NCBI GenBank assembly: GCA_020891255.1
Contig: BQFW01000008.1
Location: forward strand, 2,728,001 to 2,792,000
Length of the DNA: 64,000 nt
Direction of reading: 5' to 3'
DNA from: Entomortierella parvispora E1425
Lineage: Eukaryota; Fungi; Mortierellomycota
In this document: piece by piece, positions 9,713 to 29,894 of the stretch
Layout of the letters: each line of letters opens with the position of its first letter
Numbering within the stretch: the first letter of the stretch is position 1
Notes under the pieces: generated by a model
Database searches by the model: none
What the model was told of the DNA's origin: nothing
Seen by the model: the letters and a program-made list of their open reading frames with translations, nothing else
Position numbers and translations under genes: made by a program

Positions 9713-11156
9713 TTAAGCGGTCTCGGCAAGTCCCTCGACGAGGGCCTTGAGCTTGGCGAGATCAGCACCCAAGAGCTCACCGACCTTGGCACCCTTGTGG
9801 TAGGTCTGGAAGGTGGGCATGGCACGGATTCCGGCGGTGGAGGCGACCTCAGCGAGCTCATCAACATCAACCTTGACGAAGGTGATGCCCTCGAACTTCT
9901 CATCCTTGGAGAAGGTCTCGTACTTGGGGGCGATGACCTTGCAGGGACTAATGTTCAAAAGAATACAATTGTAGGCTGTTAGAATAGATTTTCATTATGC
10001 AGGAGATAGTAAGAGAAATACAAGCGAACAGACCCCCTCCTGGTCCCCATACTAAATTCATGCAGGAAATAGAATGATGGAACGCAAGGGCCTCCGAGGA
10101 AAAAAATGAAAGAGAACAATCCTGCAAATCTTGTAAAGCGTTTTTGGCAAAGTTGCGCCCGACGCTTCGCCACGACCTCATCGCTCGCTCGCTCTCTCTT
10201 TCCAGTTTGCCCTGTGCGCCATCGATGCAGCTGTCACGTCGCGAGAACTGGGGACATGGGAGTATGAAAGAGAACAGCCAAAACCTGAAACAGTGGCTCG
10301 CTCGCTCACTCCACTCCACTCCACAAGAACACTACTGATTGTCCACAAGGACAACACGAGGTGTAAAAAAAGAACAGGAAAGAGAGAAAAGAAAAAAAAA
10401 GAATTGGTGCTACCGATCCACCCTCGCCTTCCACCACAAGTGCACACAAGATTTGCATTGTAGTAACAAGAGAGCAAAGTGAACAAGGCGAGGGAAAGAG
10501 AAAAGAACTAGTTCCAGACTTTTTCCACAGCTCCAAGAGAGCCTTGAAAAGGGCGAGGGCGAGGGAGGTAAGAAAGAGAGCTCGCGACAAGATCTTCCGT
10601 TCCGTCCGCACCTTTACCCACGCCCCACTGTGCGATATCGAGAAAAGCGAGGGAATAAAAAAAAGAAAAAGAAAAAACCAGAAAATAGACACGGAAGCAG
10701 GATGAAAAAACAAGAGGGACAGGCCCTTGTTCCTTAGTGTTCCTTTGGCTTCCTTTGATTCGAAAACTCTAAACGGGGTGGTGACGGCCTCCCGGTTCCC
10801 GACTCTTATTTTCTTTCTTTTTTGTCCTCAACTCTGTGTTCGTGTTTTGTGTGTCCCGGAAGGAGTCCCGTCGTGTCTTTGACTCGTTCATGCATCCTTT
10901 GGTGGAAGAGGACTCCTGTCTGTCTGTCTGTCTGTCTATCCTGTCAACACCATCGCAAACACAGCACAGCAATTGAAAGACAACCAGAGGAGAAAAAGAA
11001 CCCAAAAAAGTGCACAGCTGCGGAGTCAGAGAAGAAAAAAAAGAGATGAGATTGATTTACATACCCGCACCAGGTGGCGTGGTAATCGACGATGACCTTC
11101 TCGCCAGAGGCAATGAGCTTGTTGAACTCTTCGGTGGATGTGATAGCCTTGACCAT
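9713..11156 (-). CDS. TRX1: Thioredoxin (108 aa), 2 exons: 11156-11065 and 9947-9713
   Basis: MVKAITSTEEFNKLIASGEKVIVDYHATWC-G / PCKVIAPKYE...FVKVDVDE...IRAMPTF. A GTATGT...TAG intron restores WCGPC in frame. Confidence 0.95.
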
Positions 11157-13851: not shown

Positions 13852-14159
13852 TGGGTCGTTCTTCCACTGAGTGGTGCGTGTGTGTCTGCGTGTGTCTTGA
13901 ATGGATGCGCTGTTTGCTTCCTTATATGCTGTTATGTTGTCTGTGCTCCTGCTAGTCCTTGTGTTGACCTTGGTGATTGTCTCCTTGCTTGCTTGTACAA
14001 AAGATGGGAAGGAATGTGAGTTGAACGGAAGAATGAAACGCGACACACCATGGAGTGCCTTGCATGGCATGGCACGGGTTCACTTTCTCGATGGTCACGT
14101 GCACCCAGATCCCCACTTTTTTTTTTCTCTCTGCTGATCTGAATCCCTGATCAGCTCTG

Positions 14160-17100
14160 CTCATGACGACTCGTTCGTCCCCAGTCCTTTCATCCATTCA
14201 CCAGTATCACTGACGCCGTTGTATTCTTTTTCTCTTCTGTATGTTTATTGTTCGTTTGCATCGTATCAATATGAAGATAAAAAATAAAAACTTGCCTCTA
14301 GACTTTTGGAAGCACAAAGAAAAAGAACACAAAGGTTAGTTTTTGTTGGCTTCACAAGCGTTGCCGCTTTTTTTTCTTTCATTCAAAGAAACAGAGGGAA
14401 AGGGGATGGATTTTCAGTTGGGTGCAATAACTATCAACACTGTGATTCAGGCGGTAATTCCAGCTTTAATTGCGTTTGTATCATCATAGTTGTCCGATGT
14501 AGGTTGGACAGTGGAAATTGGAGGGAAAGGTGAAATAGGCGAGCCATTGAATAAAAGGCAGAGAAACGACAGACTTACAAATTACATGTTCAAAACAGAC
14601 AGGTTGGAAGAGATGTTGGATGGACAAAAGGAATTGGAAGGGCGGAAGGGTGGAGGAGTAAGGGAAAGAAGAAAACTCTGCCATCGATTCACAATGCCAC
14701 TTTTATACTGTAAGGGACATTAAGACTGCGACAATAGTTGAAGCCACCCATTTCGGTGTTGTTGTTGAAAATGAGGCAGAACATCAAGGAATCAAAGAAC
14801 GGAGACGCGTCCTCCTTATAGCCTGTTGCCAATTGGCCAAACCCCCAAACTCAAAAAGATCACTGCAAAACCCAAAAAAAATCCAGCAAAAAAAAAATCC
14901 ACAGACAAACAAGACGATAGCACGCGTCCCCGTTCGCAAAGGGGCACCGATTGGATGCTGGGGGACCGGGCGAATAGAGGCCAGTAAAGGATACACAGAG
15001 AAGAATAGACAGAGAGAAGATGGGGCAAACAATTCAGTTCAGAAATGCTCAGCAAGAACAGCAAGAAGGAAGACTGACTATCGAGCGGCTCGCAGCTCTC
15101 AGGTCGTCAAGACCAGTTGTGCAAGCAGGTATACCCGCGGAAGGGTATGTTGTTTCAAGAAAGATGTCTGTGCCACCATCTCGCCCGCCATCAATTGGTC
15201 ACAAACTGTTCGTGTCCGAACTTTGCGCTCTCTCCTCGCTCGTTCCTCCAATGCCTTTTCCATCTCTAACACAAAAAACCACCGAGTGAGCAGAAGCAAA
15301 GACCTATGTGGTTCCAACAACAACAGGAGATGTCGGCAGGGATAAATCTGACTTTGAACATCTATTGAACACAGGCCAAAACGCACACTAAGAAGCAGAT
15401 GAAAAAGAAGAAGACAAGGAATGGAAAAAAGATTGGGTGCATGGGCGTCGATCATGGACTCACTGACTTGCCCCCTGTTCTTATTCACTCCTCCTTGTGG
15501 CCAGCTGCAGCTGCACCTCTCAACGACCAACCAGCAGCGAGCAACCACTCTGAGCACACACACAGAAAGAAGTGCAAGGCAGACAGTTCAATGAGACGAA
15601 CAAGCACGCACGAGTCTGGCGCCAAAAGTAGGGGTACAGAACAGAGAGCAGAAAAAACAAAACAGACAGGAACCGGTCTAACCCACCACTCGCGCGCTAC
15701 CAGTGGGATGGCATGGTCGTATCGACCTTTCCTTCTTCCTCCCTTTCCTTTCTACCTCGCACTTCCCGCTTTCTCCCTCCATTCCTGTTCGCCGTCGACA
15801 TATCACCCCTCCATTCGTCTTGCTCAATTTCCACTTTTTTGGGTTTTTTTTGTTTTTCTTCTTTTCCTCTTCTCCCTTTTTTTTCCCTCTCTTCGGCTCT
15901 TTCCTCCTTCCTCCCCGACCCGTTCACAGAGTACAGGGGCAACATGTCCTTCGCAGCTTCCGCTGCCTTCATCGGCTCCCCCCCCCACTCTCTATGTCTA
16001 CTATTATTCTTGTGCAAATACTGCCGCTCCTTCAGGGTCTCTGTTCGCCCTTGCCATTAGTGAGCAGGCCAACAGTACATCGATGGTGATTCAAGGGCAG
16101 GGTCTAAATGTCCAGGGATCCAGTCCTATAAAAACACCCATAGGAGCCTGGATGTTCCCCAACTCGCAAAATCAATTTATATTACTCCTGGATCAGTCAC
16201 CACCAGCGATAATAACGTTGCAGCCTCAGTCGACACCAGTTATCCCTCTCGCACAAGTTCTCTGGAACGGAACTAACAATGCGAACTGGACATTCGTCGA
16301 TCAATCAGGGGCACCTGGACTCCTTCCCTCGGGACTTACGCAGCTCTGGACAGCTTCTGGAAATACTACTGGAAGTGCTGAAGGCTCAGCGGTGTATGAA
16401 ATATATTCTGCAGCTCTAACAGACGGCGGACCACTTCCATTTGTCAACAAGCTGGATATTTCTAACGTAGTGAGTGGAGCTCAGTCGACATCCTCTTGGC
16501 TCAAGCAAGCAAATGGCGTTGACGCCACATCATCCCCACGAGTGGTTCGTTTGCTTGGAAATGTATCTACAGGCGTGAATGTAGCTGCTGTAGGGAAATG
16601 TTCCACGGCCGGCACATGCTTGGCTTTCTTTGCTGATTCGGGCTTTGGGGTAAGAAAAGTGAGAGGGCAGCTGTGAAGTGCCAGACAACGTGAATTGCAG
16701 TCTCCCTCGTAGCGCATCAACTTGTTGAATGTTTCCCAACTAAAAACTCGTCGTGCAAATCTTACCCTTGATAGGTCCAAGTACCTCAAACATCACCAAC
16801 ATACGACCCTACCGGCTGTGTCACATGTATGACCTTGAAGTTTTCAATGTTGTCAAATGAAAAGATGTGAAGAACTGACGATGAATACGATCCTTAATTT
16901 TCAGCGACTAGCGGCTCGACCAATTTGATCATTATGGTTACAACATCAGGTGTGTTCACTTTCAACTACGGTGCAGCCAACCTGCAGACTACTCCCTGGG
17001 TCAACGTTTCGAAATCCACACTTCCAAGCGCAGTCCTATCGTGCGGTGTTAGTGGCTCTAAACTGTATGCTGTTCTTCAAGGTAAAGAGAATGACCAGAA

Positions 17101-17955
17101 AAAAAATAGCTTTTCCGAATAATTCCAGTTCCCTTCAAACTTACCAACATCCTACGAAAAATATATTGTTGCATCAGGCGGTTCTATGCCCGCCATTCGT
17201 ACCGCATCAATGTCAGCAACAAGCTGGGAATGGCAAACCGCAACTTTGGTCCAACCCGTAGTGCAAGCTTCGCCCTCACCGCCAGCTACAGGATCATCAG
17301 GTGATAGTGGTGGCGCCCCTGGTTCTGGTGGTAGTAATGGAAGCAACGGCAGTAGTACAAATCCTAACGACAGCTCATCTGGAAGTAAAACAGGCAAGGG
17401 TGTCATCATCGCAATCGCGATCGTCGCCGCCTTGCTCCTGATTCTCATCCCGATCCTGATTCTCTGGTGGTGCCGCCGCAAGCGCCAGAACGACAAGAAG
17501 TACGAGGAACGGACCAAGGAGCTGAAAAAGTCTATTGTGATGGATCAAGATGGTGGGAAACGCATGTGCTCGTCCCTGCCTCTGCCCCGCGCGATTCCTC
17601 GTGCCCCCCAACATTCCCCTGTCACGTTCTACTTGGAGACCCCTGGGGCCACCCCTGCCCTCGGCGGTATGACCCTGATCGGCCATGACCGTAGCAGCCA
17701 CTCGGGATCGTCTAGCATGCCGGGCTCGAGCACGATGAGCTATGACGAAAGGCTGTCAGTGCACCCGTCGCACCCTTCGATGCAGTCTCTGCCGTCGATA
17801 CAGTCTCCCACGATGCAGTCTCCGCTACAAATGCAGGCTCAGCCATCGATCCAGTCCTTGCTGCATCCTTATCAGCAGCCCTCCAGGACTTGGTCGCAGG
17901 ATGGTGGCAGCGTGGCCAATGACGGCTCGCCCTCGCCCAGGACCTTGAACCCCTC
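14160..17955 (+). repeat. Tandem duplication unit A (~3.8 kb): upstream region plus membrane-protein gene copy A
   Basis: ctcatgacgactcgttcgtccccagtcc begins at both 14160 and 17953, and the following ~1.7 kb is colinear with small indels. Confidence 0.9.
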
Positions 17956-17959
17956 ATGA
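15944..17959 (+). pseudogene. Single-pass membrane protein copy A: +1 frameshift in a C9 run and C-terminally truncated (join 15944-16649, 16775-16826, 16905-17081, 17178-17959)
   Basis: Exons 2 and 3 (52 and 177 nt) equal those of copy B; total 1717 nt = 3n+1 because of C9 at 15978-15986; TM IIAIAIVAALLLILIPILILWW-CRRKR; stop created at the duplication junction. The frameshift may be a sequencing error. Confidence 0.6.
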
Positions 17960-19659
17960 CGACTCGTTCGTCCCCAGTCCTTTCATCCATTCACCAGTAT
18001 CACTGACGCCGTTGCATTCATTTTCTCTTCTGTATGTTTATTGTTCATTTGCATCGTATCAATATGAAAATATAAAAAATAAAAACTTGCCTCTAGACTT
18101 TTGGAAGCACAAAGAAAAAGAACACAAAGGTTAGTTTTTGTTGGCTTCACAAGCGTTGCCGCTTTTTTTTCTTTCGTTTCAAAGAAACAGAGGGAAAGGG
18201 GATGGATTTTCAGTTGGGTGCAATAACTATCAACACTGTGATTCAGGCGGTAATTCCAGCTTTAATTGCGTTTGTATCATCATAGTTGTCCGATGTAGGT
18301 TGGACAGTGGAAATTGGAGGGAAAGGGGAAATGGGCGAGCCATTGAATAAAAGGCAGAGAAACGACAGACTTACAAATTACATGTTCAAAACAGACAGGT
18401 TGGAAGAGATGTTGGATGGACAAAAGGAATTGGAAGGGCGGAAGGGTGGAGGAGTAAGGGAAAGAAGAAAACTCTGCCATCGATTCGCAATGCCACTTTT
18501 ATACCAAGACATGAAGACTGCGACAATAGAAAAACGCGTCCTCTTCATAGCGCTGTTGTGAGGCGTGACTTTTTGCCAATTGGCCGAACCCCCCAACTCA
18601 AAAAGAGCAGTGCAAAACCCAAAAAAATCCAACAAAAAAAAAATCCACAGACAAACAAGACGATAGCACGCGTCCCCGTTCGCAAAGGGGCACCGATTGG
18701 ATGCTGGGGGACCGGGCGAATAGAGGCCAGTGAAGGATACACAGAGAAGAAGAATAGACAGAGAGAAGATGGGGCAAACAATTCAGTTCAAAAATGCAAC
18801 AGCAAGAAGGAAGACGGACTATCGAATGGCTCGCAGCTCTCAGGTCGTCTAGACCAGTTATGCAAGCAGATATACCCGCGGAAGGGTATGTTATTTCAAG
18901 AAAGATGTCTGTGCCACCATCTCGCCCGCCATCAATTGGTCACAAACTGTTCGTGTCCGAACTTTGCGCTCTCTCCTCGCTCGTTCCTCCAATGCCTTTT
19001 CCATCTCTAACACAAAAAACCACCGAGTGAGCAGAAGCAAGGACCTATGTGGTTCCAACAACAACAGGAGATGTCGGCAGGGATAAATCTGACTTTGAAC
19101 ATCTATTGAACACAGGCCAAAACGCACACTAAGAAGCAGATGAAAAAAAGAAGACAAGGAATGGAAAAAAGATTGGGTGCATGGGCGTCGATCATGGACT
19201 CACTGACTTGCCCCCTGTTCTTATTCACTCCTCCTTGTGGCCAGCTGCAGCTGCACCTCTCAACGACCAACCAGCAGCGAGCAACCACTCTGAGCACGCA
19301 CAGAAAGAAGTGCAAGGCACACAGACAGTTCAAGGTATGGCGCCAAAAGTAGGCCAGGGACACAGAACAGAGATCAGAAAAAAACAAAACAGACCAGACA
19401 GGCACCGGTCCAACACCCGCGCGCTGCCAGTGGGATGGCATGGTCGTATCGACTTTCCCTCTTCCTCCCTTTCCCTTCAACCTCGCATCTCCTGCCTTCT
19501 CCCTCCATTCCTGTTCGCCATCGACATTCATCCCTCCATTCGTCTTGCTCATTCCCTTTTTGTTGTATTTTTGTTTTTGTTCTTTTCCTCTTCTTTCTTT
19601 TCTCCTCTACTCTTTCTTCCTTCCTCTCCCCGGCCTGTCTTAAAGAGTCCAAGGGCAAC

Positions 19660-22600
19660 ATGTCCTTCGCAGCCTCCGCTGCCATCGTCGGCCCCAACCT
19701 TTACGTCTACTATTACTCTTCTGCAAATACCACCGCTCCTCTGGGATCCCTATTCGCATACACTGCCCCCAATGCAACTTCGAATACACTGTTGTATACA
19801 GGACAGAGTCTCATCAACTCGGGGCCCAATCCTGTAAAATCTCCCACCAGTGCCTGGATGTTCCCTAATTCGAAAAACCAGTTGATCCTCCTCCTGAGTC
19901 AGTCATCGCCAACGATATTGTCATTGCAACCTCAGTCCCAGCCTCAGCCACTCGTCAACCAAGTTCCCTGGAACGAGACTGGCATCAACAATGTGAATTG
20001 GGCTGTTACAGATTTGTCCTCGGTGTCTGGACTCGTTCCCGCAGGCCTTTCACAACCGCAAATCTCGATTGCTTCAGGAAATTCAGGAACTTCAGAGGGC
20101 TCGGGGATGTATGAGCTTTACTCTGCTCTTGTGCAAACGGCTTCGCAGCTTTATATAACCAAATTAGATATCTCGAACGGTGGAGCCGGGGTGATATCCT
20201 TGTGGCCAAGGTCTATTGGAAATATTGATCCTACTTCGTCTCCACGAGTGGTTCGTCTGCCTGGAACCTCAACTATGGGTGTGGATGTAGTTGCAGTAGG
20301 AGGGTGCCCTCCTACTAACAGCTCAAATCCAGGAGGAACGTGCCTGAATTTTTTTGTCGACGGAACCTTTGGTAACGCGGTAAGCTCAGCGTGAGGAGAA
20401 ATGAGAAAAGGATGGAGAGAGCATGTGTCTGTGTGCAATGTGGTTTTTGCCACTGTACGTTTTGCCGCTTTGGAAGGTAGTCCTGAAGCTCTGAACCCAG
20501 CCCCTCTTTGCTCACTCCTTCACTTCAGAGGGGCTGGGCGCAAATCTCACCCTTTCCTATGGATGACCCAAAATAATTTTTTCGTCCAAAAAAGGAAAAA
20601 AAATTCTCTGATAAATAGTGTAATTTAAAAACTTTAAATAAATTCACTCTAATAATAATAAAATAGTGAGAGTAATGCCAGCCATGCAGCCATGCCATCG
20701 CTCGTCGCCCGGCTTGAATGGGGTTAATTTCTTCCATTTTTTCATTTTTCATCGCCACCACTTTCTTTCATAAACCCCGCGTTCCGATCTTGCATTCAGC
20801 TCCTGCCACCTCTTCTTTATACCCTTCATCTGATTAAATGACAAAGATGGCAAGCAAAAGACCAATCGAGCAGAGGTGAGGAGACGCGTCTCGGGTGTCC
20901 ATGATGCTCAGAGTCGCCCACGCGTCCATCTGCTCATTTTTCTTCATCTCTTCATATTTTCTGTTGTAGTCATGATGCTCTTAGCAAATCTGATCAAGAT
21001 ATCCCGGGAACGCCGAGAAGATCGCGTAGCACCAAGGTGAGTAGCTTGATGTGGTGCCTGGTGGCCTCTTCCTGGTGTGGCCTCTTCTAACTCTGTGATT
21101 TACAATAGGGTGAGGGACGATTTCGTCTTGATTCCCCAGGTGCTCCTCCGCGAACCCCGCAAACAACACAAACCCCACGAGCACCACGAGCACCACGAAC
21201 TCCACGAACCCCGCGCACCTCACAAACCTTACAAACGCCAAGATTCATACAGTCACCAATTGTGGCCAACCAAGTATGAAAAAAATCGTTAAAAAATATG
21301 TGCTGCTCGCGTTTTTCTTTTCTAACAGATGTATCCACCTCCTCCCATTCATATCGATTAGGGAACTACCAATGGTTCTGGTGCTACCGATATGGCCCAA
21401 CCTTTACCCTTTGTCATGGAGGCACAGGCTCTTTCTCCGACTTCTCAGGCTGCGTACATTGGAGGATCAACGCAATTCAACATTGGAAAAAATTCGACGC
21501 CACCCATCACTGGAGAAGAACCGCCACGACTCAATGTTGGAGAGAATTTGACGCGATCCAATGTTGGAGAAGAATCGCCGCGACCCAGCAATGCGTCGGA
21601 GGAGTTGACGTTCGATCCTTTCTGTGATAACACTGATGGAGAACCAATCATGACGTGGGGTTCTGATAACTATTATGTAAGAACCCCTTTGAGGAAAAAG
21701 TGGTCATCGATGCAGCCATCGTCATCAGCTCCTTCTTCACCCGCCAATTCTGTCGGCTCTCCGTTGCAGTCATTCTCGTCACCATCAAATGCGGTTCTTA
21801 GCCAACCTTTACCGTTTATACAAAAAAAGCGATGAACGCGAAGACGAGAGTGATGTCCAGGTAAGTCGAGTTTAATTATGAAATGGCGATGTTCTGGACT
21901 TGCATTAACTCTCACATTAAAATGCATATATGTCTGTAATCTTCATACTGCAGGATCCATTATGTAAAGAGGCTATTCAAGCTTGCCGAAAGCGTTTTCA
22001 TCACTCACCAAAGGAGGAGCAGCTTCGTGTTGTCAAACATATATACAACAAGCAGGATTGCTTACTGCTTGCGCCCTGCGGGTGGGGAAAAACACTTGTA
22101 TTTTCTCTGCCAATGGTGATGTGGAAGGACAAGATTACGGTCGTCATTTCGCCGTTGATTGCCCTGATGCAGGATCAGATAAAGGTATGCCAGCATACAA
22201 TATACCAGTCTAACAGGTATACTTTTTCTAACATATCGCGCAATGCGACCCTGTGTTAATACTCTAGAAACTCAAAGAAAAGGATGTCACTTGTTTGCTA
22301 CTCTCGACCTACAACGGCAATCGAGTTAACGACAGTGACATTAAATTAGTTAAGGAGGGACATTACAGAGCTGTGTTCATGTCGCCAGAAGTCATTTTCG
22401 GGAAAGGATCTACTGCATGCAAGGTTCAGGACCTTTGGAACAATAAGTATTGGAAAAGTCAACTATGCTCCATCGTCGTAGATGAAGTCCACTGTGTAGA
22501 TAAATGGAAAGATTTTCGGCCGTATTATTCGCAAATTGGATCATTGCGTGGTAAGGTACCTGGGGTGCCGATCGTAGGCCTGACTGCAACCCTCCCACCC

Positions 22601-25600
22601 GATTCGCTCCAGGAAATCAAGAATAGCGTCTTTCTCGCCTCGTCCACCGTTCATGTCATTCGTGTGGATGACATTCGTGATAACATCCAGCTCGAAGTTC
22701 ATACCTTTTCACTAAGGAATCGAGTCAGACAACTGGCGAAGTTGCTGGACAATACAAAGACGATTGTCTATTTTGACAGCATCGCACTTCTCAGAGATGT
22801 ACAGGACAAGTTAAGGCCATTGAGGCCTGATCTGCGAATGGACGCATTTTTCTCAACCCGCCTTAGTTCTTCCAAGGATAAAGTCCTGCTCAAGTTCATT
22901 AATAGCGAGATTGATGTCCTGTTGGCTACTGATGCCTGCGGCATGGGATGCGATATCTCAGATGTTATCACTGTGTTCCAATATGAGTAAGTTGAAACGT
23001 AACTAAGGTTGGACAATGCGGATGAAATGAGAGACGATCTTACTTACTTCAAGATATTTTCAATGATATGAAGTCTGCCTCACGATTTGACGAGTCTTGT
23101 GCAGAGGTTCGGTCGAGCAGCGAGGGGTCCTGGAACTAAAGGCTTTGGGATCCTCTTGGCGCCTCCAACTACCAGCAGGAAATACAACAAGAGACCTGAC
23201 ATCTTAAATTTCGTTGCCCCCCAATTGACAAGGACAAGGACAAGGAAAAGGACAAGGAAAAGGACAAGGACAACAGTCGGAGGAAATGTCGGTGGCATGT
23301 GGTGGATGAATATCTAGGGAACAAAATATCCTCTCGTACCAAATGTTGTGATGTATGTCTCGGTGAGTCTTGTCGCCGCAAGACGACCGAACTTACTGGT
23401 CAAATTGGGCCCGAACTGACTATACCAAAGGGGAAGAGCGCGGACAAAGATCAGGATGTAGGGAGGAACAGGTTATTGGAGTGGAGGAAGAACGAGTGCA
23501 AAAAATGGACAGGAGAAGAAGTGTCCTTCGTGGACTTCGAGCTTTGCGTTTTGCCCGATAAAGTACTCGCAAGGTTGTGCTACAAGCTCTTTGCGGCCAC
23601 CACTACTGAAATGGTGAGGTTGATAGCTGACAGCTGTGATTTTGTGCCAGTGGATTGCGATCATTTTGAAATGATCGCTGAGGTTGTGGCGAAAGCCCTG
23701 GGCGAGATAGAAAGTACGAAAAATGATCAAAATTCCTTGGTAGTCGAAGAATAGCCCATCAATTGACCGAGCCAAGATGACAAGGAGATGGAGTCACTGC
23801 TTGCATCTGATGACCCTGCACAACCAAACATTTACAGCCGGCCGGGCCATTTAACATCGCACGAGCCCAGGTCCCATTCATTCATTCTTCTTTAGTTAGT
23901 ATTATTATTGTCATAAAATATCATTCAGCTACAACATGGTCGTTGGCCTCGACTTCCTCCATATCCACAGTATCGTAGCTATCGCTTTTTCTGAGAAAAC
24001 ATGCTATAGCACTCTCTGCCATTTTGTGCGCGCCAACAGTTTGAAGGTCAACTACCACGGATGGAGAAGGCCGAGTGTCTTGCTTGGATGCCCAAAGGAT
24101 TCCACAGAACTGGAGATTGTCTCTGACAAGCTCAACATCCTCTTTCGTGGATGGTTTTTTGTGAGCAGTGCTGTTGTACTTGGTTTCTATCTCCCGTTCG
24201 AAATTACGTGCAATGGTTTGAAATATCTCGACGTTTGTTGAGATTTGTTCGCGAAGATAGTCCCAGCTTGCGTTTGGCCCTTTCGCTGCATGAGTGGCTT
24301 TGAGGAGGAAGTTGATGATTTCTTGGTACATGTCCGTTGGCATCCATGCTTGAGGAATGCCTTTAGGGTTCACCAGCATGCTTGAAAGGACCCTGTGTTC
24401 CCATTCACGCGTCCACAGGTGGCGCATGCCGTGGAGAAATCGTAGTAGCTCAAGGGCATATTTGGAATTGCCTCCGCCGTGCATCATCAATGCCACGGTT
24501 GGTAGCACACATCTTATCCGCCCAAGATCGCCAGCCTTAATAGCAGCAGAGAGTTCGATGAAAACGATCATGTCTCGGAGGAAGAGAAGAGCATTGATAT
24601 CTGCTGGAGTGCAGGGCCGGCCATTGAGCAAGGGATTGGCATGCTGCAGACTAGCTATGGCGTAAATGACAAGATCAACGAATCTTGTCATGTCAGACTC
24701 CACTGAGGTATGAAGATCTTCCCAGAGTACCATTGACATTGCGTCGAAAACAATCTTCAGCAGTTCACTGGTTGGCTTGTACTCCGGTTTATCCGTGTTA
24801 AAGCCTTTACTGGCCAATAGGGAAATGAATGATGCAAGTGAGCCTGGGGTATTGGCATCGGCGCCAAGATGTGTCTTGTAGATCGTGGAGCAAAGTGTCA
24901 TTTGGAGATGGAAGAGCTGAAACGTAGGATGTACCCAACCAAGACTGCCGAATGGATCCGACTCAACCATGCGGTGTACCTTGAGAGATAAAAGTCTAGA
25001 GACAGTCATCTGATCACCGGCCACTATGATGTCCCTGGTGGTCTTGCTGAACCATTCATCGCTTAAGCCGAGATCTATCTTTGTTATGTTTTCCAGCACT
25101 GCGAGATTTCCGGCAATAGTCGACTCATCGATCTTCATGGTTGGCAATGGAAAAGTTTTCGTCTTAACAACCTTCAGTACGTCAATGGCCGGCATGGGAA
25201 TCACGCAAACACTGGGTGATCGAGGCAAAAACTGCGAAATGGCAGTCGACAGATGTGTGCGGCAGGCAGCCCTAGTCATGGTGCGGTCGGTGCTTGTGGG
25301 GAAAAAAATGCTGGCGCTTGGCTCTGGCCTGTCCACTCTGAAGCAAACCATTGGGGATGATCGAGGTATTTCAGCACTCCTGGAGCTCCCGAGATTTGAG
25401 CTGTCGGGAATCAGAATCACGGTAGCAGCTGTGCCGTTGTCGAACGTGTCTCTTTTTCCTACTCTCTGGTGATGGTGCCTTGTGGCAATGTTGATGTTGT
25501 CGTATACAATGTAAAAGTCGTTGTTGAGGACTGCCACCTTCACCCTCTCCTGTGCGTCTTTGGTCAAGGCCTTCAATGCCCTGTGAATCTGATCATATGA

Positions 25601-28600
25601 CACGCAAAGTCCAAGAGCCGACAAAGTCTCTAAAACTCGTCTGGGAGCTCCCAGGCAGTGAAGATAGATGCCCATTACCATCTGAAAAGCATTGCATTGC
25701 TGGGATCTCAAGAACATGAGCATAGCAGAGATGCAGCCACGAACAGAGCTGGGTTTTTCGACCGCGCCTGCGAGCAGGTGTAGCGCTTCCCACAGTTTCT
25801 TCATCATTGTTGCCGATGTTGTCACTGCCGTTGTTGACGGTGTTATCGCCGTTGCTGTCGATGTCGTTGTCGCCGCTATTGTCGCTGTTGTCGCTGTTGC
25901 TCTCGGTGTCGTTCTCACTGTCGTTGCCGTTGTTGTTGCCTTCGTTTACTCTGGTGCTACCATCGCCACTGTTCGTACCATTTCCCTTGCTAAGCATGCC
26001 GTCCAAAAGTCGTGTCAAAAAAGAAGCTTCGCCGGCGTAAGAGTCGAGAAACCCGTTCCTGAGGATCTTATCGATATTTTCCTCCGACATTCTATTGTGC
26101 GGGAATCGGTAGGCTGGGTGTGGGCCATCGTCACCTACGACGCCGTTCTTGAGGCGATCAAGCTCCCGTTTAGTCCTTGAGACAACGACGTCTACAGCGC
26201 TGTTCACAAATGGGGCATCCCATTCTTTGATCTTGCGTAACTTTTGGCTCCAAATTTTGATAACGCGACGAGGACCGTCTTTGTGATAGAATTGATGAGT
26301 CCAGCGCTTGATGTTTTCATCTTGAGAGTTAAACAGCTTCTCGAAGAAGGCGGGAAGTGAAAGCTGTTGTTCCCTGATGTAGTTAAGAATCATTGCAACT
26401 TTGTGGGTAGAGGAATGCTAAAAAGAAAAATAATTGTTAGACGCCTGTGGGAGTGACATATTGCTGGTTTCTTTGGACAACCGGTCTTCACATACATGCG
26501 GCTTCCTTGTTGATCCGGGCATTCGATCCTCTCCATTGGTCGCTCTGAGTGTGGGGGAATCGGGCATGCACATCTATACGTAATTCGTAATTCACTTGAG
26601 AGGTAATTCATAAATTACGATAAGGATGTTTTCGAAACCATGTGCTGAATTTACCTGCAGTGTCGATGAGTTGAACTGCTCCTCCATGTCGGCCGTTAAA
26701 GTCCTAATCCTATCACTGAATTTCACTGCATGTTAGAAATTTGCGTAAACCTGGGGGCAACTAAAGTTGCGACAGGGTAGGCAGGTTGGGGTATCTCATG
26801 CTTACGCGAACTGAGGGGTGCTCAGATTCCTAGATCGTCGCGAGTTTTTTCTTGTGGGGGTCCTCATGTAATCGTTCCCAGAAACCCATATCATCGGCGT
26901 CTCTGTTCGATTACTTCCTAATCTCCGAAGCCAGAATGGGCTATCGAATGGCTCTCCATCAGTGTTGTCACAGAAAGGATCGAGCAGAGACTCCTCTGAC
27001 GCATGCTTGGGTCGCGGTGATTCATCTCCAATGCTGGGTCGCGGCGACTCTTTTCCAATGTTGGGTGGCGTCGAATTTTTTCCAATGTTGAATTGCGTTG
27101 ATCCTCCAATGTACGCAGCCTGAGAAGTCGGAGAAAGAGCCTGTGCCTCCATGACAAAGGGTAAAGGTTGGGCCATATCGGTAGCACCAGAACCATTGGT
27201 AGTTCCCTAATCGATATGAATGGGAGGAGGTGGATACATCTGTTAGAAAAGAAAACGCGAGCAGCACATATTTTTTAACGATTTTTTTCATACTTGGTTG
27301 GCCACAATTGGTGACTGTATGAATCTTGGCGTTTGTAAGGTTTGTGAGGTGCGCGGGGTTCGTGGAGTTCGTGGTGCTCGTGGTGCTCGTGGGGTTTGTG
27401 TTGTTTGCGGGGTTCGCGGAGGAGCACCTGGGGAATCAAGACGAAATCGTCCCTCACCCTATTGTAAATCACAGAGTTAGAAGAGGCCACACCAGGAAGA
27501 GGCCACCAGGCACCACATCAAGCTACTCACCTTGGTGCTACGCGATCTTCTCGGCGTTCCCGGGATATCTTGATCAGATTTGCTAAGAGCATCATGACTA
27601 CAACAGAAAATATGAAGAGATGAAGAAAAATAGAGCAGATGGACGCGTGGGCGACTCTGAGCATCATGGACACCCGAGACGCGTCTCCTCACCTCTGCTC
27701 GATTGGTCTTTTGCTTGCCATCTTTGTCATTTAATCAGATGAAGGGTATAAAGAAGAGGTGGCAGGAGCTGAATGCAAGATCGGAACGCGGGGTTTATGA
27801 AAGAAAGTGGTGGCATTGAAAATGAAAAAATGGAAGAAATTAACCCCATTCAAGCCGGGCGACGAGCGATGGCATGGCTGCATGGCTGGCATTACTCTCA
27901 CTATTTTATTATTATTAGAGTGAATTTATTTAAAGTTTTTAAATTACACTATTTATCAGAGAATTTTTTTTCCTTTTTTGGACGAAAAAATTATTTTGGG
28001 TCATCCATAGGAAAGGGTGAGATTTGCGCCCAGCCCCTCTGAAGTGAAGGAGTGAGCAAAGAGGGGCTGGGTTCAGAGCTTCGGTAGTCCTGGGAAATAT
28101 TCTACCGCCTAAGCTTGCACTGAATTTTCTCTTGACAGTTTACATCAGCACAAGCAAGTCCGCCATACGACTCGTCCAGTTGTCTCATAGGTAATTTCCG
28201 ATATGCACCGCTGAGGAAGAAGACGAGCAGGGTTTATTGACGATTAGCCTTCGTGGCTTTATTTCTGGATGTCCAGCCACTAGTTCGAGCAAACTGCTTG
28301 TAATGATTTCCAAGACGGGTACATGGACATTCAATTACGATGTCGAATCCGCCCAACTACAATCGACTCTTTGGAGCTCGGTTTCGAGCGTTTCTCAGGC
28401 AGGGATTTTGTCGTGTGGTATCAGTGGCACACAGCTGTTTGCTGTTTTTGGAGGTAAAAACGAACGATAGGATACGTAGAAAACATCTGAGTAGAGGTCA
28501 AAGTGAGGGAGGGTTGAAGCGATTCAAACAGTCTCCATACCAGCGTGCCCATTGTTTCTAATAGTCAGCCTATTCTTGTCGTGAAAACTATAGGCAGTGC

Positions 28601-29894
28601 TCAACCCACTATCAAGACTGCACAAATGACAGCAACATCTTGGACCTGGCAAACTCCTACTCTGACCCAGCCTTCGCTTCTGCCCTCGCCGCCACCGCCG
28701 CCTACAGGATCATCAGGTGATAGTGGTGGCGCCCCTGGTTCTGGTGGTAGTAATGGAAGCAACGGCAGTAGTACAAATCCTAACGACAGCTCATCTGGAA
28801 GTAAAACAGGTTTGGGCAAGGGTGCCATCATCGCAATCGCGATCGTCGCCGCCTTGCTCCTGATTCTCATCCCGATCCTGATCCTCTGGTGGTGCCGCCG
28901 CAAGCGCCAGAACGACAAGAAGTACGAGGAACGGACCGAGGAGCTCAAAAAGTCCATTGTGATGGATCAAGGCGGTGGAAAACGCATGGGCTCGTCCCTA
29001 CCTCTGCCCCGCGCGATTCCCCAAGTGCCCCCAAGGCATTCCCCTGTCACGTTCTACTTGGAGACCCCTGGGGCCACCCCTGCCCTCGGCGGTATGACCC
29101 TGATCGGCCATGACCGTAGCAGCCACTCGGGATCGTCTAGCATGCCGGGCTCGAGCACGATGAGCTATGACGAAAGGCTGTCAGTGCACCCGTCGCACCC
29201 TTCGATGCAGTCTCTGCCGTCGATACAGTCTCCCACGATGCAGTCTCCGCTACAAATGCAGGCTCAGCCATCGATCCAATCCTTGCCGCATCCTTACCAG
29301 CAGCCCTCCAGGACTTGGTCGCAGGATGGCGGCAGCGTGGCCAATGGCGGCTCACCTTCGCCCAGGACCTTGAACCCCTCCCCCCGGACCTTGAACCAGC
29401 AGCACCAGCACAGCTTCAGCGACAATGAAAGCACGGCGGGACCTGGGTCCGTTGATGGATACCATTCCGACGCGCGTCTGAGCCGTGGTGGTATCTATGA
29501 TGACAAGCATGAGATCATGAGCCCTGACCGAGACCCGTATGGACACCATGAGCGCTCGACCACGAGCATGAGCTACCTGAAGAGTCCTGCCTTGACCGAA
29601 TTGGAACACCCCCGCTCGACCACGACGATGAGCTACATGAAGAGTCCGGCCTTGACGGACTTGGAGCCGCCCATGCCCCTCATGTCCCCCATGTACTCGC
29701 CCCCCGCCCATTACCAACACTCGAGCACGGACAGCGCCGTCACGGCCAACTCGACGCTGGGCGCTCCTATGGTCCAGATGGCGACCAAGCCTAAACGCAT
29801 CCGGATGGAGGACATGGTCTCCCCAGGCCTCATCAACGCCCAATTGATCCTCCAGCAGTCGCAAAAGCCTCAGAAAGTGTCCAGCCTCCGTTAA
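19660..29894 (+). CDS. Single-pass membrane protein copy B, 749 aa (join 19660-20379, 28139-28190, 28277-28453, 28594-29894); transposon in intron 1
   Basis: Canonical GT-AG sites give an open 2250-nt frame: S/T/N-rich putative ectodomain, G/S linker, TM helix plus RRKR, and a long S/P-rich tail. Confidence 0.8.
20476..20484. repeat. 9-bp target-site duplication GGTAGTCCT (left)
   Basis: Identical 9-mer directly abuts both TIR ends (20476-20484 and 28083-28091). Confidence 0.95.
20485..21506 (+). repeat. Left terminal inverted repeat (1022 bp)
   Basis: Reverse complement of 27062-28082; the few differences found (near 20745-20755, 20935, 21315) are all outside the predicted exons. Confidence 0.95.
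20838..23754 (+). CDS. Transposon-encoded RecQ-like SF2 helicase, multi-exon, starting in the left TIR; two homopolymer frameshifts
   Basis: Motifs APCGWGKT (I), VISPLIALMQDQ (Ia), VDEVHC (II), LTATL (III), LLATDACGMGCD (V), QRFGRAAR (VI), and Zn-like CRWHVVDEYL..CCDVC. Frameshifts at A7 21822-21828 and C6 23217-23222. Confidence 0.85.
23921..27730 (-). CDS. Academ-type (DUF6589-like) DDE transposase, multi-exon, starting in the right TIR; one homopolymer frameshift
   Basis: Candidate catalytic motifs IVYDNINI, VAGDQMTV, FQLFHLQM, PTDMYQEIIN. ORFs 25593-26393 and 23921-25918 join by removing one base at T5 25754-25758 (RRRGRK-PSSVRG). Confidence 0.8.
27062..28082 (-). repeat. Right terminal inverted repeat (1021 bp)
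   Basis: Mirror ORFs in the track (e.g. 21077-21292 + vs 27275-27490 -) and direct base comparison. Confidence 0.95.
28083..28091. repeat. 9-bp target-site duplication GGTAGTCCT (right)
   Basis: Matches 20476-20484. Confidence 0.95.

Follow-up and report, generated by a model that had tools for sequence, protein, structure and literature searches.

Terminal inverted repeats that probably provide the start codon and leader exons of both genes in an AcademH-type transposon of Entomortierella parvispora

In a 64,000-nt stretch of the genome of the soil fungus Entomortierella parvispora (assembly GCA_020891255.1, contig BQFW01000008.1), a DNA transposon of 7,598 bp occupies positions 20485-28082. 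This stretch is referred to as the window, and all positions are those of the window unless another sequence is named. The element contains a helicase gene on the forward strand and a transposase gene on the reverse strand, which converge inside it, and it is bounded by terminal inverted repeats (TIRs). The evidence supports a structure in which each TIR is a duplicated module of a start codon and leader exons; the module undergoes transcription and splicing, and its reading frame continues into a different gene on each side. Over their first 133 residues, the helicase and the transposase are identical. The element is very probably an autonomous, recently active, AcademH-type cut-and-paste transposon in which each TIR launches one of two convergent genes with a common N-terminus.

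The two arms match from their tips to positions 21506 and 27062, and arm-specific bases begin at 21507 and 27061. From the tip inward, the left TIR contains a conserved tip with a 12-nt palindrome, an upstream region and 5' untranslated region (UTR), the ATG, exons 1-3 and the first 145 nt of exon 4. The part between tip and ATG comprises approximately 350 bp of upstream sequence and 5' UTR. In DNA contigs, the depth is 1627 over the TIR, twice the 839 of the internal contig. A first-pass annotation, made from the sequence alone, had described the four leader exon stretches as mirrored on the other arm and joined in frame. Both points hold: exact copies lie at 27730-27693, 27582-27531, 27458-27294 and 27206-27063, and translation of the joined exons gives the peptide that had been quoted. 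At the transition from the shared leader to arm-specific sequence, the junction peptides are NSTPPITGEEPPR and NSTPPNIGK. Between the arms there are one adjacent two-base substitution and three single-base indels, the latter within or next to T runs. These differences fall only in non-coding parts, as had been noted, but the pattern does not serve as evidence: of the four events, three are homopolymer lengths, and the chance probability is 0.14 if all are real. The only such difference in the stretch compared with read-derived contigs, at 21312, is contradicted by the reads. The sequence from 21507 to approximately 21710 is diverged yet homologous to the transposase arm. The approximately 70 residues that follow the shared 133 have a similarity score of 170, compared with 41 +/- 8 for shuffled sequences, and the paralogy of the two arms thus reaches beyond the present TIR edge.

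Splicing of the leader is seen in run X2, which comes from the same sample as the assembly. A search for RNA runs listed none; this run is labelled 'DNA?' and is treated here as RNA because it shows only spliced forms, skips nine GT..AG introns exactly and has reduced depth where introns lie. The comparison of X2 and X1 (DNA) contigs with the window begins at position 21000; exon 1 and intron 1 lie outside it. The X2 contigs exactly skip the TIR introns 21037-21108 and 21274-21361. They also skip the helicase introns 21861-21953, 22185-22267 and 22987-23073 (GT..AG on the forward strand) and the transposase introns 26716-26805, 26574-26654 and 26418-26495 (GT..AG on the reverse strand). Splicing is seen for two of the three TIR introns and for all six downstream introns. 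The earlier prediction of GT-AG splicing is confirmed for these two TIR introns, and for intron 1 (20876-20984) the NCBI models differ from it by 12 nt. They take an in-frame acceptor 12 nt upstream, so that exon 2 starts at 20973 and the NCBI proteins P0062 and P0001 contain four extra residues, HDAL. With this acceptor, the identical N-terminus is 137 residues long. An exon 2 that starts at 20973 aligns better with Podila, which has the HD motif.

The X2 contigs also show how the leader is connected. A 463-nt leader contig stops at 21506, the last base common to both arms. A 5,102-nt contig with both gene bodies begins within the shared sequence, at 21477, 30 nt upstream of the first helicase-specific base. 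Its transposase-side end lies just past the compared stretch, and the mirrored end is visible in an X1 DNA contig. In the X2 assembly graph, the leader contig is wholly within the TIR and is connected to both arms. Such a Y-shaped graph is what a single leader shared by two arms would produce. The first-pass annotation had described the TIR as a duplicated promoter-plus-leader module. The start codon and leader exons of that module are confirmed; since the leader contig is confined to the TIR but the end of a contig is not a transcription start, the promoter is a putative one.

As assembled, neither gene is open from the TIR into its catalytic domain, and the earlier claims that the leader runs into the helicase and its mirror copy into the transposase do not hold for the window as it stands. 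The leader open reading frame (ORF) stops at 21833-21835, before the helicase domain, owing to an A7 run at 21816-21822, and the transposase frame is broken at 25754 by a T5 run. Read-derived contigs contradict the window at four base-run sites (21312, 21822, 23216 and 25754). At the last three of these, the DNA and RNA contigs have A6, C7 and T4, respectively. At 24436 and 26552, where the element copies L001 and L002 on other contigs of the same genome differ, the contigs agree with the window. The base-run differences of L001 and L002 are found at the equivalents of 24436, 26552 and 20855. With read-supported homopolymer lengths, open frames extend from the TIR ATG through a helicase of 795 aa and a transposase of 1,097 aa, and both earlier claims hold; the introns that separate transposase exons 4-6 from one another and from the last exon are confirmed by X2. 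The chance of such an open frame over 250 codons in the helicase arm or 265 codons in the transposase arm is P ~1e-6 each at this base composition. The NCBI model of L001 is a 799-aa helicase that starts at the TIR ATG. The NCBI transposase P0062 (1,101 aa) also starts at the TIR ATG and equals the read-supported transposase except for the four-residue acceptor variant. The apparent frameshifts are probably assembly errors, or at most copy-specific lesions, because the copies are distinguished almost entirely by single-base indels within or next to base runs and the reads disagree with the window.

Two other explanations of the early stop were considered and rejected. A programmed +1 frameshift at the A7 run is not congruent with the A6 found in the DNA and RNA contigs and in both L001 and L002. 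A short intron at 21677-21714 that would bridge the frames is only 38 nt long and has mismatched phases, and the same stretch is coding on the other arm.

A TIR-embedded start of both genes is found in six further elements from five other Mortierellomycotina species, with 8 to approximately 95 shared residues. In Podila verticillata (L003), the TIRs are perfect over approximately 825 bp, the target site duplication (TSD) is TCGAAAAGA, and a homologous four-exon leader gives approximately 95 shared residues. In P. humilis (L009), the TIRs are perfect over 900 bp, the TSD is TTATCTCGC, and a homologous four-exon leader gives approximately 81 shared residues. Both arms are open in each. Intron phases 2, 0 and 0 are common to the leaders of the window element, P. 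verticillata and P. humilis. The phase-2 first exon ends in CAGA(A/G) before the GT in P. verticillata and Mortierella alpina (in the latter by eye from the alignment) and in CTCAG before the GT in P. humilis. The NCBI helicase model of P. humilis starts at the TIR ATG. In P. verticillata, the NCBI model MVEG_10419 (L003:9769-10295) starts at an ATG at 10002, inside an apparent leader intron 2 with three CTAAC boxes; the four-exon leader from 9769 is homologous to that of the window element and in frame on both arms. The P. clonocystis contig (L006) is the internal part of an element, with both ends in coding TIR sequence. Linnemannia gamsii (L005) has a 250-bp TIR with 10 shared codons, and Gamsiella multidivaricata (L008) has two families with 29 and 8 shared codons and without introns. 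The relatives that share 8 to 29 residues have no sequence comparable to the window leader. In Gamsiella, two different helicase/DUF6589 elements lie end to end (L008:7772-20476), their TIR tips overlapping by approximately 7 bp (14032-14038); in the first of these, a 562-aa gene without a Pfam match is the helicase.

The convergent helicase/DUF6589 pair is present in eight related elements with both genes annotated, including one in Mycena vitilis (L007), where a long TIR was looked for and not found. The M. alpina locus (L004) has TIRs and leader-like exons but one degenerate tip; no helicase is annotated there, and an open frame was not obtained. The TIR tip is conserved in Podila; outside the tips, TIRs from different genera can hardly be aligned. 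Within elements, the arms are 100% identical. From this contrast we infer that the TIR arms are homogenised by concerted evolution. Across the sequences compared, both genes consistently start at an ATG embedded in the TIR, and the shared coding length varies with the inner TIR edge. What is conserved is a layout, not a domain.

The leader is rich in Pro, Thr, Ser and Arg, contains ten [ST]P sites and has a net positive charge. It is predicted to be coil, with a predicted local distance difference test (pLDDT) score below 50 over residues 1-270 (shallow alignment). A phmmer search with the leader against 1.8 billion representative proteins returned only its own cluster and one translated tandem-repeat artefact (P0063). 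Leader residues 1-137 are not on record as an exact Logan gene product. In protein alignments, the Entomortierella and Podila leaders score 78, compared with 39 +/- 7 for shuffled sequences, and are still recognisably homologous.

Several observations weigh against a shared, TIR-encoded N-terminus. The RNA status of X2 is taken solely from its splicing pattern and depth. The leader is linked to the gene bodies through assembly-graph topology without a single spanning molecule, and contigs drop rare variants. The depth of the leader contig (112) is below the sum expected if the leader were present on all transcripts of both genes. Of the words of the element, a share of 0.77 is found in X2, compared with 0.72 predicted from the spliced model and 0.76 with intron 1 retained, which makes some unspliced RNA or an extended 5' UTR likely. 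Between genera, there is no difference in DNA conservation between TIR exons and TIR introns, and no purifying selection on the leader is detectable.

These observations bear on the possibility that the TIR exons are only a spliced 5' leader, with one or both proteins starting at a downstream methionine and sharing no N-terminus. Such an arrangement would be congruent with a leader that evolves as fast as its introns and is predicted to be disordered, and with the NCBI models of some relatives that start downstream (P0007, P0018 and the 545-aa helicase in L003). It is nevertheless unlikely. In the window element and six others, an open frame runs from the TIR ATG to both catalytic domains (P ~1e-6 per arm), the main ATG at 20838 has an A at -3, no ATG is present between 20718 and 20838, and in a better-supported model the P0007 start falls within an intron. 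The TIR also contains an upstream ORF, which begins at the ATG at 20718 and whose TAA abuts the main ATG; it is relevant only if transcription starts upstream of 20718.

A use of the TIR module by only one gene, with the other copy a passenger of TIR symmetry and its gene served by an internal promoter, is very unlikely. The leader depth is less than twice the body depth of 79 and no single molecule ties the leader to a named arm, but the contig with both bodies starts in shared sequence on the helicase side (its transposase-side end lies past the compared stretch). The frame beyond the TIR is also open on both arms in every element examined, which a passenger copy would not preserve. Least probable, and only barely conceivable, is an assembly artefact in which identical arms or shared exons come from collapsed or mis-joined repeats. 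Homopolymer errors are present in the assembly of these copies, but three copies occupy different sites with their own TSDs, the TIR contig has twice the internal depth, and the same layout is found in independent assemblies of five other species.

Table 1. Features of the transposon in the window. Strand: +, forward; -, reverse; a dot, none.
Feature	Position	Strand	Basis
Left TSD, GGTAGTCCT, 9 bp	20476..20484	.	Identical 9 bases at 28083-28091
Left TIR, 1,022 bp, feeds helicase gene	20485..21506	+	Inverted repeat comparison; DNA contig depth
Leader exon 1, 38 nt, ATG 20838, ends in phase 2	20838..20875	+	Translation; mirror 27730-27693
Leader exon 2	20985..21036 (or from 20973)	+	Donor side by RNA joint 21036/21109; mirror 27582 (or 27594)-27531
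Leader exon 3, Pro/Thr/Arg-rich, TPR repeats	21109..21273	+	Both boundaries by X2 contig; mirror 27458-27294
Helicase exon 4; 21362-21506 is TIR, identical to other arm	21362..21860	+	Contigs, translation, arm comparison; exon-4 mirror within TIR 27206-27063
RecQ-like superfamily 2 (SF2) helicase body, exons 21954-22184, 22268-22986, 23074-23754 (including stop)	21954..23754	+	Pfam, PDB matches, RNA-contig introns
Transposase large last exon: conserved helical N-terminal domain, low-complexity N/D/S stretch, DUF6589 catalytic core	23921..26417	-	Pfam, model
Transposase exons 4-6: 27206-26806, 26715-26655, 26573-26496; 27206-27062 is TIR	26496..27206	-	RNA joints, NCBI P0062
Right TIR, feeds transposase gene (ATG 27730)	27062..28082	-	Inverted repeat comparison
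Right TSD, GGTAGTCCT, 9 bp	28083..28091	.	Direct repeat of left one

The helicase contains the Pfam domains DEAD and Helicase_C, and its best PDB sequence matches are WRN, RecQ and BLM at E ~1e-15. The transposase matches the Pfam family DUF6589 (PF20231) at E 1e-91; in the Pfam scan of the DUF6589 protein, no transposase family was matched. The AlphaFold model of its core has a pLDDT of 82. When the core model is aligned to known structures with VIA-align, the highest score is to Hermes (Z 12.1 over 298 residues), followed by the P element transposase (9.4), ISCth4 (8.0) and Transib/RAG1 (approximately 7). On the basis of this model, the core is assigned a DDE RNase H fold into which a helical domain is inserted. 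D-N, G-D-Q and several E residues, candidates for the catalytic D, D and E, are the same in all 19 homologues compared. One RNA contig is continuous over 23074-26417, which spans the last helicase exon, a 166-bp spacer (23755-23920) and the last transposase exon. The two convergent mRNAs meet or overlap at the 3' end, where double-stranded RNA could form.

The element family is recent. L001 and L002 occupy different sites with their own 9-bp TSDs (TATGAGTGC and AAGTTCTGT), and perfect 9-bp TSDs are found at three independent E. parvispora insertions as well as in L003 and L009. The differences among the three E. parvispora copies amount to one adjacent two-base change plus ten single-base indels, all of them within or next to base runs. 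The 90% protein cluster contains models from approximately ten loci, and the closest database protein to the window element is EMPS_07069. Since three copies lie at separate sites, each with its own TSD, and the cluster spans approximately ten loci, the family has transposed recently. It comprises approximately ten nearly identical copies and is expressed. Genome-sized runs with the same species label (X5-X8 and X11) contain next to none of the words of the element; the family may be confined to this strain, for example after a recent invasion, or these species labels may have been applied loosely. On both sides of the insertion, the flanking sequence contains diverged local duplications with 89-97% identity (14160-19757; 17270-17955 / 28686-29380), which are unrelated to the transposon.

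Within the conserved tip, the 12-nt palindrome (CCAGCCCCTCT...AGAGGGGCTGG) lies at 20497-20508 and 20527-20538 and is mirrored in the right TIR. It is kept in P. verticillata and P. humilis, and its inner arm is kept in M. alpina. This palindrome is probably a transposase-binding or hairpin element.

In the favoured explanation, the left TIR would launch the mRNA of the RecQ-like helicase and the right TIR that of the DUF6589 DDE transposase. Transcription would start inside each TIR from identical promoters, both mRNAs would be spliced at the same TIR introns, and translation would start at the TIR ATG. The conserved tip is the probable transposase-binding end. Selection would hold the layout and the open frame, not a specific leader sequence. 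The probable advantage is that identical promoters give the two partner proteins matched expression, and the leader may contribute a basic, [ST]P-rich disordered tail common to both. The first-pass annotation had also assigned to the leader a shared localisation and phospho-regulation of the two proteins. This is not supported as stated, because the leader is predicted to be disordered, its exons are no better conserved than its introns, and some relatives share only 8 to 29 residues. The tail may have a specific function in import, modification or co-assembly, but the data lend this no support. It is doubtful that the shared N-terminus is a coupling device, in which concerted TIR evolution keeps the two heads identical and the enzymes are imported, modified or assembled together at the transposon ends. 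If it were, a sliding inner TIR edge would let the element rewrite the N-termini of two proteins at once.

TIRs are generally regarded as non-coding binding sites that contain promoters at most, as MuDR does; in this element they are coding DNA as well. A single TIR change would strike transposase binding, the promoter and the N-termini of two proteins together, and TIR homogenisation would make the heads of two different proteins evolve in concert. Annotation of transposable elements that masks TIRs, or that starts gene models within them, will mis-call these genes. MVEG_10419 and several helicase models from relatives look 5'-truncated or mis-started. The frameshifts in the assembly would wrongly brand an apparently intact, transcribed family as dead, and gene models in repeats of this assembly call for caution. 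The family is a candidate for the study of a live AcademH element and of the role of its helicase.

AcademH as a kind and TIR promoters are already known, and public gene models contain the shared start without comment. Two papers that cite Kojima 2020 (Mob DNA 11:15) describe AcademH elements as having a helicase gene beside the transposase gene, TIRs and a distribution in fungi that includes Mucoromycota (PMC10045372, PMC10799480), with a helicase and 9- or 10-bp TSDs in the former (PMC10045372). The window element likewise has a helicase next to a transposase, a 9-bp TSD, TIRs and a fungal host. The earlier AcademH assignment fits its 9-bp TSD, its TIRs and its SF2 helicase; the DDE fold is compatible with Academ but not specific to it. 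In the literature searched, there is no account of two genes fed by duplicated, TIR-encoded coding exons. The novelty that had been claimed for such exons holds within that literature, which does not include Kojima 2020, the paper that defines AcademH.

Maize MuDR also has two convergent genes (mudrA and mudrB) and a 9-bp TSD. We know of no TIR-encoded residues shared by its proteins MURA and MURB. Each MuDR TIR carries the promoter of the adjoining gene (PMC10401008). The MuDR TIRs of approximately 0.2 kb supply promoters only, whereas the 1-kb TIRs of the window element contain an ATG, three introns and 133 codons. The window element does not group with Mutator/MuDR: Pfam gives DUF6589 only, and the IS256-type ISCth4 structure (Z 8.0) ranks below hAT and P. 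Whole genes are duplicated within the terminal inverted repeats of poxviruses and of Euplotes Tec elements. The window element resembles these in having coding sequence in its terminal inverted repeats, two copies per element, but in it one 5' gene fragment is fused to two gene bodies. In En/Spm, TnpA and TnpD have a common 5' exon and one promoter through alternative splicing of a single transcript. The window element similarly has two transposon proteins with a common 5' exon, and it differs in that the exons are present as two DNA copies, one in each TIR.

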